A stretch of DNA of 63,710 nt, filler included, from Reticulomyxa filosa (GCA_000512085.1; 17 parts of 17 records of this genome joined end to end with filler, not necessarily neighbours in it); one strand, 5' to 3'. Positions 33,753 through 41,889 are shown, numbered from the whole stretch's first letter. Notes: generated by a model not told the origin, from the letters alone. A program made the numbers and translations.

Positions 33753-34469
33753 CTCTCATATGTGCACATGCATTTTACCCCTTTTTTTTTTTTTACGAAC
33801 AATAATAATAATAATAATAATGAATAATATATATTTATATAAANNNNNNNNNNNNNNNNNNNNNNNNNNNNNNNNNNNNNNNNNNNNTTAATTAATTAAN
33901 NNNNNNNNNNNNNNNNNNNNNNNNNNNNNNNNNNNNNNNNNNNGTGTCAACTTTCTTTTTTATCTTACTGTAGTATTAGAATGAAACATGCTATCCCAAT
34001 TGCATATAATGCAAGCTTCATTGCAATTGCCAAGCTGGACAGCATTTGGACATTGTAAAATTCATACAAGCAATAAATATTTTTTAAAGATCAAAAATGA
34101 AACTTTTTTTGTGTTTAATTTGAATAATTTTGAAGATTATTTTAAAATACATATTAATATTAATCATTTACTTTAATTTTGATGTCTTAACAGACATGAG
34201 CATTTTAACATTTTAACAGATATTTGGAATAATTTCATCAAAATATTCTTTTATCTTGAATAGTTTGATAAACAATTTTTTAAATTGCGAAAATGATGTC
34301 CTAAAATTTTGAAAAGATTGATAAGCTCAGCAATTTACACCTTCAATTTTACAAACATTTTCTTCCTCTTAAAAAAAAGAAGATAATGCACAGAAGTGAG
34401 TGATTGCACATGTTTCAACTTTTGTCATCGAACGTACACTATTCCAATGTCTCTTTTCTGACAATAATT

Positions 34470-37400
34470 TTAAAATTTGCCTCCACGTTGTTTTACAAGC
34501 AACTTTTGCCAATGTTCCAAGCCGCTCACCCCTTCCCATGTACTGCCAACGGTTGTTAATCCGCAACCATCAACGCCTACTTGCCACTTGCGTCTCACCT
34601 GTCCCGTACGCCACAAATAAGAACTCGATGGTTTGAGATTTTCTTTGACTGTTTTAGTGTTACCAACGTCTGAGCGTTGCTCATCAAGCCCAGAATCCAC
34701 TACCCAGAGTCGAATTGTACGGTCACTTGAAGAAGATACAATTGAACAACCATCTGGCGAAAACGAAATTCCGCATACTGGACCCGAGTGCCCTCTTAAT
34801 GTTGTTATTCGTTTACCTGCTTTAACATCCCATATTCTAATTGTTTTATCATTTGAACACGACGCAAGAATAGTTCCATCTGGCGAGTACTGAATTTCGT
34901 TGACAATATCTGAGTGCCCTTTCATGCAATGTATCTGTTTTCCTGATTCAAAATTCCATATTCGAATTGTTTTATCAAATGAACACGAAGAAAAATGTTG
35001 GCGATCAGGTGAAAAATGGATAGAATATACTAAATCTTCATGTCCCTTAAACTTTTTCGTAAAGGCACATGTAACTAAGTCATAGACACGAATATCCGTT
35101 ACTCCAATTAAAATAGTCCGACCATCCGGAGAATATTGCACAGAAAGAGGCGAAATAGCTGTAATTTTGCTGATTTCTTTTTCTAAACGAACATCCCATA
35201 TCCGAACTGTATTATCAAAACCAGCTGACACAATATTGCCACCGTCTGGTGAATAGTGCAACCCCATTATTATATTGGAATGTCCCTCAAATTTTTTAAT
35301 TTCTCTTTCGGATGAAACATCACATATTCGAATTGTTCCATCAACTGAACATGATACAAGTGTATGACCACCTGGTAAATAATGCAAATCACAAATGGTT
35401 GCAGTGTGATTCTCCAATTTTTTCAATTCTCTTCCTGTCATTGTGTCCCATATTCGAATGGTTTTATCAGCTGAGCCACTTGCAATTGTGAGACCATCCG
35501 GTGAAAATCGAATGTTTTTGATAGCACCCTTATGCCCGTCCAATTTTATTAACTTTTGTTTTGTTACAGCATCCCATCTTCGAATGGTTTTATCAACTGA
35601 GCAAGACAAAATAGTGCTGCCATCTGATGAGTATAGCACTCCAGTTACATTACCTAAATGTCCTTCCAAGCTGTTTGACTCTCTTCCTGATTCTACATTC
35701 CATATTCGAATTGTTCTGTCTTTTGAACAAGATACAATCGTGCGATCGTCAGGCGAAAATTGTGCCATATCTACTGCGAACAAATGCCCTACGAATTTTT
35801 GTATTTCATTTCCTGATTCGACATCCCATATTCGAATTGTTTTGTCAGTCGAACAGGATAATATAGTGCGTTTATCATGTGAGTATTGCACTGTTTTTAT
35901 CAAGTCTGAATGTCCTTTGAACACTTGCACTTCTTTTTTTGAGTTGATATTCCACAATCGAATTGTTGAATCTTTTAAGCATCCTAGAATCATAGAATCA
36001 TCTGGTGAAAATTGAACACTTTGTATACCGATTTCTATTCTATTGAATCCTGCCAACGCTCGACCTGAATTTACGTCCCAAAATTGAATGTTGCCAATCT
36101 TTGAGCAAGCCACAATCATATGACCACTAAATGAGTATTGAGCATGTAGCACAGTATCTTCCAATTGAAAATGCCTAAACAGCTCCCCTGACGTCGTATC
36201 CCATATTCGAACTGTAGCATCTATTGAACACGACAAAATATGTTTGCCATCTGGCGAATATTGGACCTGATGGATGGCAGCGGTATGGTTTATTTTCTGA
36301 ATCTCCTTTCTTGACTCTAGATCCCATATTCGAATCGTTTTATCTGTTGAACCTGACACAACTGTGCGTCCATCCGGAGAATAGTGTATTGATGTTATAG
36401 CATCAGAATGACCTTCTAAATACGGATACTCACCAAAGTTAACACCTTTGAGCTTTGCATTTTTAAAATTAGTATTACGCAAGAAAGCTTGTGAAAAACT
36501 AACATTGTTCAAGTTTGCATTTACCAAAGTTGTTCCTTCTAGAAAGGCCATATCTAATATGGCATGAGGGATTTGAATATTGTCCCAATTTTGATCGTGC
36601 AAATTAGCTCTGGCAGCATTGAGGATAGTTGCAGCATTAGAGGCACCAATTTGAACTTGTTGATTTGTTTTTGATGACTCAATTATTCGGAGCAATCGAG
36701 ATTTTAAATTAACAAATTTTTCATCCTGGTCACGAATTTTTTCGACAATGAAGTAGATGACTTCCATGTCTTCGTTTAACAGCTTGGAATTGATTTTGAA
36801 AGTGTGAGCTTTCTCTTGAAATTGTCGTTGGAATTCGTTATTGTTAAGACCAAAGTGAGTTGGTCGCCATGAAAGGATATCATAAATAATAGCATGTGCA
36901 GCAAAATATTCTTGAAAAGACTTGTGCAAAAATGAGTATTGATTTTTACCAAGCCGTCTCAATATACATTTGGCCAAAGAATCTCCTTGAAAGTATTTGT
37001 CCCATACATGAAGTCTCGAGAACTCAGCGAAAGAATCTTCCGTTTTTGTTTCGTGTACATCATCGTTAATCGTTCGACTGATAAACTTACTGAACTCATC
37101 GAAAAAGTTGCCAAATTTTTCGCTCTTTGTATCCATAACCGGATCTACTTTTTTAAAGAAGCTGTCAATTTCACGACTGGCATCCAAAGTCCTTTCTGTT
37201 GCGACTTGACTTGCTTGCAAAAACATTTCAAATCCTAACTCTTCGCAATATTTTTGTAATGCAATTTTCATTTTATTTACATTAACTTGTATTCGTAGAT
37301 CTGATAATTTATTGGAAAGAGTGTGTGCATGTAAATTTATCCATTGTTCATTGAATGCTTCATACACTTGCGTCCTTGAAATATTGGCCCCTTTGGGATG

Positions 37401-39983
37401 TCTTTTCATCAATTCTGGTAATACTGTCAATATCAGTCGAAGCAAGAATGGCTCTTCCACCATTTTATGCAGATTGGGATAGACTTTTAAAGTTTCTGTG
37501 TATTGCAATGGTGTCCAATCTGAATTTTCCATTTTACTTTTTTTAGTCATGTTACAAATTTTTCAATATAAGCATGCATTTTTTCATTTGAGAATGGCCA
37601 CAAATAAATCATTGTTGTTGTTGGACCAAGCAAAACTTGTTTGATATCTTCTTCATTTAATACATGACTTCGACAAGTAACAATGAATTTTGCATTCCAT
37701 CCACTTAAATTAAAACGGTTATAAAAGTTTCTTCCTTTGGTTTCATTACCCTTGCTTTTGTTATAACCATCAAATATTTCATCAAATCCATCTATAATAA
37801 ATACAAATGAAATAGTTTCTTGGATGATATCTATTGTCTCTTTGTTCAATTGTTTCATTTGCAGTGCTTGAGAAATGACATCTTGTTCATTTAGATGATT
37901 ATAACATTTTGGTAACGAGATATAAACAGGAATGGATGAAGTAAAACCATTTACATAATTTTTCCATAATGTTTCTTCCAAATGACGACAAAATAAACTC
38001 TTTCCTGATCCTGATTTTCCTTGTAATATCATCACTTGTTTTGGCTGTTCACTTTTTTCTTCTAAAAATTCAATTATATGTTGATGACAATCATACGTAG
38101 CATTACTTTGTTTACTGTCATCTTCACTTACATGCGGATAATTATTTGCCTGCAATGGAATATACATTTCAAGTGCTTGCAGTATTGCAGTATCTTCTTC
38201 TAATTCTTGTTTTCTTGATTGTTGTAATATGAATGCAACATCAGCACAACTTGTAGGATTTGTGTCGCCCATGATACATTTTTTGAAATATTCAAATAAA
38301 ATCACATAAATTGCCCTTCCTTTCAATTTCGTTGGAGTAAAATTGCAAAGTTGAGTATACACAAATTGTGCTAATTTCAATACAGTATTAGCATTGATTT
38401 CTTCTGCTGTTTTTCCCTTTAGTTGGGGTGGTTTCAATATTCCAATGCTGAGATGTTCTTTATAACGATTTGCAATTTTTTTAATTTCTTTTTCGTTAAT
38501 CCACTCACAAATAATGTCATTGATTTTGATTAAAGTTTCATCACTTGCTTGTTTCAATTCTTCTTCATTTGAATTATTTGGTTTCCATGCTCGAATCAAT
38601 TCATAAAATAAATGACTTAATTTTGGGTTTTCAATTATTGTATATCCTTCTAATGTCGTGAAGTTTTTCAATGTGGCTTGCATTTCAATATATACGTCAT
38701 GCTTTGGAACATACAATTTGACATTATGAAAACGATGATGAGTCTTCGATTGCTTATTGAAGAAGTCCTTATCTTCAGACACAATCAAATTGAATTGTTC
38801 GGCTTTCTTTATCACTGCTACTGCAGTTTGTAATTTAGTTGAATTATCACATAAAATAGTAAATCTTCCAATATCAAATGCTTGATTAAAATCACCATCA
38901 TAATCAGCTTGAATCTTTTCCAATAATCTTTCATTTCCTTTCAAACTGGAAGATTTCACAACTGTGATGTCATATCTTTGCAATTCTGTCACTAAATTCT
39001 TAATTTCAATACTATTCATTGCATTTTCACTTTTTTCTCTTAATTCTTCAATACTCTTTGCATGCTGTCGAATTTTCGTTGCGCTAATTTCATACAAAAT
39101 CCCAGGTTGGATTGTATATGAGCATTGATAATTGTTATCTTTCACAGGTGCCAAATCACCGCTTGCACCAATCGAATGCTCTGCATTGTATAACATGGCT
39201 TTTACAACTGATGTAACTGTTAATTTTCCACAATCAGGACAGGTAAATAATGTTTGTCCGGACATGAATGACACGCTCTCGAATCCAATGTTCACCCACA
39301 CCAACAGTTTGCCTTTTGCTGCCAAGCAATCTTCATTTATGCAATTGCCTTGTAAATTAATACCAGGTTTAAATTCTCCAATTTCCACCAATTCTTTTTC
39401 TTTCCGTAAATTGTCTACTTTCTTTTCTTCCATTTCAATAACTTGCTCACTGTTCGTCTTATTCGAGTTTTTATTTGCCCATTTTTTCGTGACATAAATA
39501 AATAAATGTTTGTAATGATTTTAACTTGTATAGTATTGTCAATTAACAATTCCGTCTTATGCTCCGATAACAAATCTTCATTTACGTTCTTTGATATTTA
39601 AAAAAAAAATAAACAAAAAATAGTGACAATATGTAATTATACACAAATCTTACTTTTTGTTTGAGCAATTTCGAGACCAGATGTTCAATTACATGTGAAA
39701 CATTGCCATTGTTTTGTTCCAACGTCTTTCGCAATTCTTCTTCGTTCGTAACCTCATCACATAATCTTAACAATGCTTTTATCTCCATTGCATATTTTTC
39801 TTGATTATTGTCTTGTTTTGCATGCTCTGGCTTATTATCCATTCCTCCATTCATTGTTGGCTCCTCCAAGCCAACTTTGTCAATTCCGACATTTCCTTCC
39901 ACACACAGTTCAAATACAGAAACATATTCACTCACGTTCGATGTACTTGTTTTATTGCGACGTTCTGTTGCCAACGTACTCAT
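34470..39983 (-). CDS. NLR-like STAND protein: UBA/CUE-like, Cys4 domain, RelA/SpoT-like nucleotidyltransferase, NACHT, pentapeptide repeats, 14 WD40 (about 1770 aa; one 1-nt frameshift)
   Basis: Exon 1 is 39983-39654 (GT donor). Exon 2 starts near 39457. Walker A GKSGSGKS at 38020-37997 and Walker B FVFIIDGFDE. NACHT-associated PFLL and YSFLHKSFQEYFAA. Pentapeptide repeats at about 36430-36610. 14 WD40 repeats at about 36420-34700. ORFs 37547-39433 and 34470-37550 join at the frameshift. Confidence 0.88.
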
Positions 39984-41889
39984 AGTGTGGAATAAGAGAA
40001 ATACCACAAAGTAATAATGTACCCAAGATTATGAAAACGGCAGAATTTTGAAAAAGGGTTTCCTTGCTTTCTGTGTATAACGATGTCTTTTGAATATTAG
40101 GGTGCGATTTTTCTGTATTTTAAAAATAACTTGAATTTTATGTATAGTGTTCAAAAGAAGTGAGTGAAAGGGTATATAACACAAATTTCAAAAAACCAAA
40201 ATCATCAAAAAATATATAGTTTCCTTTCAGCTTTTTTTTTATTATTTCTTATTTTTTGTTTAAATCGTATGCTATTTTTTAGCGCTGTCGAAGTAGATGC
40301 AATATAATTAAATACATTTGACACAAATAGTCCAAGTACACCCATGAAGAATTGTTTAAATAATTTTCTAGAAAATTGCAGGAAAGAGAAAACTGCTCAC
40401 ACTGACAACAAACTACTGTGACTTCAAACTTATCAAACATCACCATATTGTATAATTCCCATTTAAAGTCACTCCATTACGAAGCCAGTATCTTCGTATG
40501 TTGCAATTGATGTTGATAGTGGATCCATGTTCTATCTTTTTTTTAACTCAAAAAGGGCATTACTTGCATTTGAGGGAAAACGTTTGAAAGTTTTGAAGAA
40601 AAAGACAGAACGCTTTAAAGTTAAAGAAAACAACAAAAAGAATATAACAGCTCGTTTTGTTAAATTTCATGAGTTTGACAAGTAAAAAATTTGAACATTT
40701 TTTCAAAGTTTTGAAGTAACAATGAAGATTGTGCAATATTTTGATAATTCAAGATATCTCCTTTGCGAAAAAGTTCTTACAATGAGATAACAGAGATTCT
40801 TTTAAAAGACAATGTAATTGTTTGAATTGAAAGAGTAAAAAAAAAGCAACTTATTCTGTAGACAAAAAAAAGTTGAATTGAGCGCTTTATTCCCTTTTTT
40901 CGAAGCCGTTCGTCGTTGTTCGTGTCCAGCGTTGGTGGTGACAAGATTAATATTGATATCTGCGCCATCCGCGTTCGAAAAAAGTTAAGCAAGCACATTT
41001 TTTTTGCTTTTGACATTTGGAAGTTTGGAGTTGAAACACTACTACAGATAAAAGTATTCGTCGAAGGCCCGCTTTAGAGGAGCCGTAGTCGAGTTGTGGA
41101 GTCGTTATTGTGGATTAATTGATATCGAGATTATAAGTTCCGGTTCATTTGTTGCAGATGGGTATTCATGGTGTTGTATGGTGGCGTATGGTGGACGTTG
41201 GTGGTGGCTCCGGTAAAAAAAGGAGCCAAGTCAGACGCTAGCGCAATAAAGCGCTTATTATGACAGCGATGTGTCATCGCGGTAATGCGTGCAACGGGCG
41301 CGTCGGTGAACTGCAGCAACAATGGCCACATGATAGAGTTGCGCGAGGCATCACCGACAATTAAAGTTTGCAGGATCGGTATGGCAGTGTCCATCTGAGG
41401 ATGGGCATCACAATGAAGTCTCTCCCCCTTGGTGTTACCGGCCTGATGGCCGTGTCAACAGAGGGCGAAGGGAGACAGTGTGATAGCAAAGGCGCCCATG
41501 TATTTGGCTGACAGACGATCGTTTTACGACGTCACGCCGTATTTCAAGTTATTTCTGTGCAACCAATGTTTATTTCTGTACATACTGAAGTACTTGTGTA
41601 CTTTGTGCATAGGCTGTTGGATCGATTGGCCGTGAGAATTGATGGAGATTAAATGGATTGCTCCGGCATCTTATTATTATTAGTTGTTTTTTTTTNNNNN
41701 NNNNNNNNNNNNNNNNNNNNNNNNNNNNNNNNNNNNNNNTTAATTAATTAANNNNNNNNNNNNNNNNNNNNNNNNNNNNNNNNNNNNNNNNNNNNAACAT
41801 AAGTATGTCAAATAGCTCGATGATGAAGTATTATTTTTTTTTTTTTATATTAATGCAGCAGTATCAGGCAAACACATCATTTGTCACGT

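Follow-up and report, generated by a model that had tools for sequence, protein, structure and literature searches.

A Tas1/Apk1-like RelA/SpoT homologue domain in an NLR-like gene family of the foraminiferan Reticulomyxa filosa

Could an enzyme of the alarmone synthetase type serve as the effector of an NLR-like receptor in a foraminiferan? The question is raised by a locus of Reticulomyxa filosa at positions 34470-39983 of the window, the whole 63,710-nucleotide stretch of joined R. filosa records analysed here, filler included. An original prediction made from this DNA had proposed a nucleotide-binding oligomerisation domain (NOD)-like receptor (NLR) with a RelA/SpoT homologue (RSH) domain just N-terminal to its NACHT domain. 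This arrangement holds, with the RSH domain followed by a Pfam NACHT domain (45.3 bits) in the open reading frame (ORF) 39433..37547 and by 12 WD40 matches in the next ORF. Over the full locus the domain order is a CUE/UBA-like exon, a 196-base intron, a Cys4 module, the RSH domain, a helical linker, NACHT, a pentapeptide-repeat spacer and about 12 WD40 repeats. We consider it likely, at a probability of about 0.72, that the gene is one copy of a large R. filosa family of NLR-like proteins of the STAND class (signal transduction ATPases that have numerous domains), carrying a Tas1/Apk1-like RSH effector that works as proposed below.

Fold and type of the RSH domain

The RSH synthetase-fold domain is encoded on the minus strand at 38564..39076 (ORF residues ~120-290), and the peptide quoted in the original prediction for 38956-38588 is identical to the minus-strand translation, running from KSSSLKGNERLLEKIQADYDGDFNQAFDIGRFTILC through KDFF, HHRFHNVKL and YIEMQAT to SHLFYELIRA. 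In this copy, Pfam RelA_SpoT (PF04607) matches residues 165-252 with an E-value of 3.4e-4 (21.3 bits). Two paralogues, P0097 (30.2 bits) and P0111 (27.9 bits), clear the cut-off of this Pfam family and a third, P0113, scores 26.4 bits, these close paralogues being 75-77% identical to the window copy within the domain. An exhaustive phmmer search with the single sequence against 1.84 billion representatives returned 94 matches, about three quarters of them R. filosa paralogues or fragments and about fifteen of them distant homologues of bacterial or metagenomic origin at ~30% identity. RelA_SpoT is recognised at E ≤0.01 in seven of the ten distant homologues scanned, with scores of up to 40.6 bits. 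A scan with NCBIfam gave chance-level matches only, and PADLOC found no match on the effector-NACHT ORF.

Searches of the PDB point in the same direction at every depth of alignment. With the single window sequence, Tas1 is the top match (E 0.15). Three profiles were also searched, one built from the R. filosa copies alone, one from the distant homologues alone and one from both (the mixed, or family, profile). The R. filosa profile matches Tas1 at 1.4e-4, the sole match below E 0.7. The mixed profile retrieves Tas1 (4e-17), RelP (8e-8), and RelQ and RelA (~5e-4), and the distant-set profile retrieves Tas1 (5e-20) and RelP (5.5e-9) together with RelA, RelQ-like proteins and an exported Streptomyces synthetase. 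Aligned directly with hhalign, the R. filosa profile and the distant RSH set match over 162 columns with a probability of 99.6% (E 1.1e-24). A template-free AlphaFold2 model of the domain, computed from the mixed alignment, reached a predicted local distance difference test score (pLDDT) of 83 and a predicted template modelling score (pTM) of 0.73; an alignment-free fold of residues 1-350 (pLDDT 32) was discarded. When the model was compared with the PDB using Foldseek, all 50 matches listed were RSH-family enzymes, with Tas1 first (4e-7). Ranking by VIA-align placed RelP (Z 13.9), Rel (13.5), RelQ (12.5), Staphylococcus aureus RelP (12.5), Tas1 (12.4) and CapRel (11.8) among eleven leading RSH entries (Z 13.9-8.4), the best non-RSH entry having a Z of 8.2.

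These results bear on the possibility that the domain has a generic Pol-beta-type nucleotidyltransferase fold, resembling a cGAS/DncV-like nucleotidyltransferase (CD-NTase), a minimal nucleotidyltransferase (MNT) or a terminal uridylyltransferase (TUTase), and is not an RSH at all. CdnE, TUTases and MenT are indeed among the structural matches, with Z 6.9-8.1. However, all eleven RSH entries outrank every other fold, the sequence profiles match RSH proteins only, and each residue of the RSH-specific motifs (K..R...K, D..R.T, KD[FY], E.Q and H..Y) lines up with its counterpart in Tas1 and RelP, so that this already disfavoured reading is highly improbable. Since profile matches, Pfam scores of paralogues, hhalign and the structural ranking agree, we regard the RSH assignment, which draws on sequence comparison and a predicted model, as secure. 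The order of RelA/SpoT motifs noticed in the original prediction is therefore real and not a product of chance.

The motifs of the window copy are K165-x3-R169-x3-K173, Y178-x-G180-D, D187-x2-R190-x-T192-I, K222-D223-F224, H233-R234, E250-x-Q252 and H274-x2-Y277, which align with Tas1 and RelP residue by residue in the mixed-profile alignments. D187 pairs with the Asp of the D-x2-G-x-R motif and E250 with the Glu of the E-x-Q-x-R-T motif. In RSH synthetases the basic residues of these motifs hold the ATP phosphates, the Asp binds Mg2+ and Glu-x-Gln is catalytic. Conservation of these two predicted catalytic residues across paralogues, which the original prediction had left to be established, proved high: position 187 is Asp in 64 of 68 paralogue domains and in all 19 distant homologues compared, and position 250 is Glu in 57 of 60 and in 15 of 15, respectively. 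Of the 47 paralogue domains that span all seven of K165, K173, D187, R190, R234, E250 and Q252, 44 retain the full set, as does every distant homologue. Given that the paralogue domains are 45-87% identical overall, this retention argues for selection on catalysis and against the alternative that the RSH fold persists without it, either as a nucleotide-binding or regulatory module or because the whole family consists of decaying, repeat-like pseudogenes. That alternative can draw on a frame break in the window copy (see below), on the loss of a catalytic-motif residue in 3 of the 47 complete domains, and on the many family members that are fragments on short contigs. Such fragments are, however, expected in an assembly as fragmented as this one, in which the contigs concerned are mostly 1.3-15 kb long, and we judge an explanation without catalysis to be improbable.

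The signature K-x3-R-x3-K ... Y-x-G-D ... D-x2-R-x-T-I follows the Tas1/Apk1 pattern and not the canonical R-x-K-x3-S-x3-K and D-x2-G-x-R, and Tas1 is the top PDB sequence match in every search, whether with the single sequence, the R. filosa profile or the mixed profile. By closest sequence relation and signature, the family is thus a Tas1/Apk1-like type of RSH. It departs from Tas1 at F224. This residue aligns with the Tyr of the RelP KDY motif, and 65 of the 71 paralogue domains carry F or Y here, but in Tas1 the position is not aromatic. In small alarmone synthetases the KDY Tyr stacks on the acceptor base, and the aromatic F224 therefore keeps a guanine acceptor open. Enzymes of the Tas1/Apk1 type are lethal, ATP-consuming (p)ppApp synthetases, and among their homologues are makers of (p)ppApp, of (p)ppGpp and of both (PMC12691689). 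Since Apk1 homologues differ in this respect, the product cannot be read from likeness to Tas1. Our rough weighting makes adenine nucleotides the leading, if tentative, candidate for the acceptor and a guanine or mixed acceptor possible but doubtful; transfer to a tRNA 3′ end or other acceptor seems unlikely, as does a complete absence of catalysis by the RSH domain.

Transfer to tRNA would make the domain an active RSH enzyme like CapRel or FaRel2, which would pyrophosphorylate the tRNA 3′ CCA end and stop translation, with no free alarmone formed. CapRel indeed ranks high in the structural comparison (Z 11.8 over 152 aligned residues) and fills rows 39 and 44 of the Foldseek list, and tRNA-modifying toxic small alarmone synthetases (toxSAS) carry the same catalytic motifs (preprint 10.1101/2021.04.30.441581). 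Against this, no other solved RSH comes nearly as close in sequence as Tas1/Apk1 (4e-17), and neither CapRel nor FaRel2 occurs among the sequence-search matches. Alignment of F224 with the base-stacking RelP Tyr would, in addition, fit a free purine nucleotide as the acceptor. A CapRel-like activity is on balance a poor candidate, and synthesis of a free alarmone by a Tas1/Apk1-like enzyme is the reading we follow here.

Several of the distant homologues have toxin-like domain contexts. P0074 is a protein of 3127 amino acids with two tandem RSH-like domains (residues 2285-2790) followed by a calpain-type protease, and P0084 combines MuF (phage head morphogenesis) with an intein and a pair of RSH-like domains (residues 836-963 and 1950-2013). 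As read from their sequences, both contexts are polymorphic-toxin-like. Other distant homologues are DUF4781 fusions.

The receptor, its family and its relatives

The RSH domain is joined to NACHT by a helical linker (38069..38563, minus strand), which belongs to no Pfam family, is kept in paralogues and, in its C-terminal part, falls within a match to the metagenomic protein P0092 described below. The NACHT NTPase itself (37556..38035, minus strand) is recognised by Pfam (PF05729) over residues 467-626 of the 628-amino-acid ORF, its 45.3 bits comparing with a cut-off of 26.7, and both its Walker A (GKSGSGKS, 38020-37997) and Walker B (FIIDGFDE, 37801-37778) motifs are intact. The frame break (37547..37555) follows at its end. 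It consists of two bases (37552-37551) after a Val codon (37555-37553), at a point where one codon stands in paralogues. A stop at 37549-37547 then closes the upstream frame, and the downstream one continues from an ATG at 37550. Translated searches (tblastn) with the contiguous paralogues P0001, P0002 and P0004 accordingly match the first frame through 37555-37553 and switch to the second from the ATG at 37550. Beyond the break, and likewise on the minus strand, lie a post-NACHT helical region corresponding to the NOD-associated arm (36609..37550), which is present in paralogues and colinear at 25% identity with P0092 residues 905-1160, a pentapeptide-repeat spacer (36429..36608; Pfam PF00805, 33.8 bits versus a cut-off of 20.2), a WD40 region (34665..36419; Pfam WD40 E 1.2e-125) whose 12 Pfam matches leave room for two propellers, and a C-terminal tail with the stop codon (34470..34664). 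PADLOC gave one match on the WD40 ORF, HEAT-ARM_XIII (2.3e-40).

The window copy may be dead, as the break suggests that it is a pseudogene of recent origin or else misassembled. The architecture is intact, as a single protein of ~1,400-1,700 amino acids, in contiguous paralogues such as P0004 (1734 amino acids) and P0001 (1368 amino acids). Altogether, 51 named R. filosa proteins of 345-1099 amino acids match the RSH domain, and paralogue-like domain segments occur in 96 proteins among those retrieved. From these sequences, we estimate the R. filosa family at about a hundred gene models. Precomputed public Pfam annotation marks RelA_SpoT together with NACHT on at least three paralogues, so that the architecture is implicit in databases and, as far as we have seen, apparently undiscussed.

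Relatives are also found outside the R. filosa assembly. P0020, from an ENA metagenome, and P0050, from the environmental record AAFX01, are 37-51% identical to the RSH domain of the window, and judging by these sequences the family probably exists in related organisms too. P0092 (L001:2745-6257) is a metagenomic protein of 1170 amino acids on a 6.5-kb ENA contig with the order ankyrin-RSH-NACHT. It is colinear with the window gene through the RSH domain (27% identity), the NACHT region (39%; ORF residues 403-627) and the post-NACHT arm (25%), and differs in having ankyrin repeats at its N-terminus instead of the CUE-like motif and Cys4 module, and in lacking WD40 repeats. The RSH-NACHT fusion, given this colinearity, occurs outside R. 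filosa as well and is either older than the R. filosa family or was transferred beyond it. The compact gene spacing and 45% G+C of the P0092 contig suggest a bacterium as its source. For the NACHT-pentapeptide-WD40 chassis, the nearest named relatives are in Mortierellomycotina fungi and their Mycoavidus and Glomeribacter endosymbionts, which fits the HetD/E-like clade that Kibby et al. pointed out.

Among described receptors, the closest parallel is fungal. NLRs with the order RelA_SpoT-NACHT-WD40 have been described in fungi such as Gaeumannomyces graminis (Dyrka et al. 2014, PMC4986451), which bears out the original prediction in listing RelA_SpoT as a known rare N-terminal domain in NLRs of fungi. 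It makes up <1% of annotated fungal N-terminal domains (PMC4986451), and 14 (82%) of the RelA_SpoT NLRs of Sordariales are of the T-NACHT type (PMC12258605). The fungal clade is minor and without experimental characterisation (PMC10197012; PMC12258605), and surveys since 2014 have listed the domain with no activity or role shown (PMC4986451; PMC10197012; PMC12258605). The two groups share the order of RSH-like effector, NACHT and WD40, a likeness that rests on the published architecture; in both, the effector is classed as enzymatic, and both sit within expanded, variable NLR repertoires. They differ in that R. filosa belongs to another supergroup (Rhizaria, Foraminifera), adds the CUE-like motif and Cys4 module before the RSH domain and the pentapeptide spacer before WD40, and has a very large family of roughly a hundred gene models where the fungal clade is rare. 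In the single-sequence phmmer search, no match was identifiable as a fungal RelA_SpoT NLR, none of the 14 distant matches whose source was checked carrying an organism name. We found no paper combining 'Reticulomyxa' with 'NACHT' in the literature searched, which did not include most subscription journals, and those pairing R. filosa with WD40 concern other subjects. Nor did this literature hold any description of such receptors in foraminifera or other Rhizaria, in line with what the original prediction had supposed. As far as we could find, the RSH-NACHT-WD40 arrangement has so far been described only in fungi and is new for Rhizaria.

Among enzymes of solved structure, the one closest in sequence to the R. 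filosa domain is Tas1/Apk1 of Pseudomonas aeruginosa (PDB 6OX6). The two share K-x3-R-x3-K ... Y-x-G-D ... D-x2-R-x-T-I ... E-x-Q ... H-x2-Y-E-x2-R and a fold match, for the model, of Z 12.4 over 161 residues. Other Tas1/Apk1 homologues include Apk2 on MuF phage toxins and exported alarmone synthetases (PMC12691689). Unlike Tas1, which is a secreted interbacterial toxin with a neutralising immunity protein and has no K-D-aromatic motif, the R. filosa domain lies inside a eukaryotic STAND receptor and its copies keep KDFF. No cognate immunity gene was seen on the contig. Since the domain is internal to a STAND protein and the contig has no other gene, the protein would work like a toxSAS at most and not as a member of a toxin system. 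In structure, RelP (SAS2), RelQ (SAS1) and the synthetase domain of the long Rel/RelA enzymes rank best (Z 13.9, 12.5 and 13.5, respectively), and their catalytic Asp, Glu-x-Gln and KD-aromatic motifs align with those of the R. filosa domain. However, their sequence likeness is weak and seen with the mixed profile only (E 8e-8 to 5e-4), the R. filosa Arg stands two positions earlier (D-x2-R-x-T versus D-x2-G-x-R), and the R. filosa protein is devoid of hydrolase, ribosome-binding or regulatory domains.

Proposed mode of action

By analogy with NLR and other STAND proteins, we propose that the WD40 propellers, the presumed sensor, would bind a ligand, after which the NACHT domain would exchange nucleotide and drive oligomerisation of the receptor. 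The N-terminal RSH domains, which are predicted from their retained motifs to be enzymatically active, could then be switched on by being clustered or released, and would move pyrophosphate from ATP onto an acceptor. Fast ATP consumption with a build-up of (p)ppApp and/or (p)ppGpp would be the most likely output, and the affected cytoplasm would be arrested or killed. In a syncytial, fusing protist such as this foraminiferan, an immune or allorecognition response of this kind is plausible, again by analogy, and the same holds for ligand-induced oligomerisation, which we infer from the behaviour of related receptors.

The following observations weigh against this proposal. The RelA_SpoT score of the window copy, 21.3 bits, falls under the curated gathering cut-off of 27 bits. 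The alignment given to AlphaFold2 held recognised RSH domains, so that the model is not fully independent of the sequence evidence. The assembled window copy is split between NACHT and WD40 by the net one-base frame break. Finally, its WD40 repeats are not near-identical in DNA and Tandem Repeats Finder reports no array in the piece, and a hallmark of the fast-evolving recognition repeats of fungal HNWD proteins is therefore absent from the window gene. A predicted homodimer of the RSH domain scored 0.00, a value that counts neither for nor against self-association.

Considered together with the fungal NLRs, the R. filosa family extends this arrangement to a second eukaryotic lineage very far from the first, where it is greatly expanded and has kept its catalytic residues. 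It also links the RSH domain of NLRs with the Tas1/Apk1 group, whose alarmone synthetases are lethal and consume ATP. This allows a concrete hypothesis, namely that some eukaryotic NLRs kill or arrest cells through nucleotide pyrophosphorylation. If true, a further bacterial conflict enzyme would have been reused as a eukaryotic immune effector, beside the TIR and PNP_UDP domains. A wider picture, which we put forward tentatively and hold to be possible though far from assured, is that R. filosa, a giant syncytial foraminiferan with fusing pseudopodial networks, deploys about a hundred NLR-like receptors for immunity or allorecognition with a Tas1-type pyrophosphokinase as their death or arrest effector, the RSH-NACHT module being shared with or derived from bacteria. 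Synthesis of (p)ppApp and/or (p)ppGpp with depletion of ATP would then be a cytosolic effector mechanism of eukaryotes, parallel to the depletion of NAD+ by TIR domains. The family also constitutes a set of natural variants for expression.

Gene model, front end and remainder of the contig

The locus lies on R. filosa contig ASPP01006438.1 (assembly GCA_000512085.1), which is present in the window as a whole piece of 7,752 bases (33944-41695); the foraminiferan host guessed in the original prediction is thereby correct. All coding sequence found in it is on the minus strand, the two long ORFs being 39433..37547 (628 amino acids) and 37550..34470 (1026 amino acids) with an overlap of 4 bases. 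On this sequence reading, the minus strand carries one NLR-like gene, and no other gene was found on the contig. The span of 34470-39983 given in the original prediction thus stands as one gene, but not as a single open frame, as it is interrupted by a predicted intron at about 39653-39458 and by the break at 37552-37551.

Exon 1 (39654..39983, minus strand) starts with an ATG at 39983 and comprises 110 codons up to the donor AAA|GTAAGA at 39654/39653. The predicted intron (39458..39653, minus strand; 196 bases, GTAAGA...AATAAG, phase 0) ends at the acceptor AATAAG|ACG at 39458/39457, which rejoins the frame of the 628-amino-acid ORF eight codons ahead of its first ATG. Paralogue N-termini align to both flanks of the intron, and exon 1 can be assigned to the gene because 37 R. 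filosa gene models contain its helical motif (KYAMEIKALLRLCDEV..EEELRKTLEQNNGNVSHVIEHLVSKLL). Exon 1 is included in the public protein RFI_08308 (P0098, 759 amino acids), which contains the upstream ORF and uses the same acceptor with a donor 39 bases later (GT at 39614). Its model reads 13 hydrophobic codons (VRFVYNYILSLFF, window 39615-39653) beyond the consensus GTAAGA donor before splicing. From the sequence at the two sites, the earlier donor (39653) looks more likely. The public annotation of the locus, a hypothetical protein of 759 amino acids in which only NACHT is recognised and a separate WD40 protein of 997 amino acids, is incomplete, two genes being called because of the frame break at 37552-37551.

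The 1.7 kb upstream of the gene (40000-41695) holds no convincing ORF, tRNA or Rfam match, and open frames upstream of 40300 were judged to be noise. Rfam, a tRNA scan and Tandem Repeats Finder returned nothing over the whole piece, and a scan for bacterial promoters and terminators was uninformative, the host being a eukaryote. The G+C content of the piece is mostly 25-39%, with ~43% at 34444-34943; upstream of the gene it climbs from ~0.30 to 0.48 towards the contig end, and it is 47-48% across the final 750 bases.

The original prediction had described the N-terminus of the protein as a UBA-Cys4 front end. The four cysteines of the Cys4 module are as described, whereas 'UBA' proved weak and is better given as a CUE/UBA-like motif. 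Pfam CUE matches exon 1 of the window copy only weakly (E 0.015), and is the commonest weak Pfam match among paralogue N-termini (11 of 31, best E 1.9e-4), no score read reaching the cut-off; a profile search of the PDB gave the UBA-like region of USP25 at E 0.11. The Cys4 module (39080..39376, minus strand) combines C31-x4-C36 ... C65-x2-C68, as positioned by translation, with beta strands. It has weak zinc-ribbon matches only in Pfam (HVO_2753_ZBP, E 0.023), and an Atlas feature search for it leads to unnamed eukaryotic proteins, mostly of rotifers. Among the proteins retrieved for this analysis there are 79 matches to the module, and the paralogue P0097 (RFI_08856) bears it twice, at residues 25-120 and 400-502, which suggests that the Cys4 module can duplicate independently.

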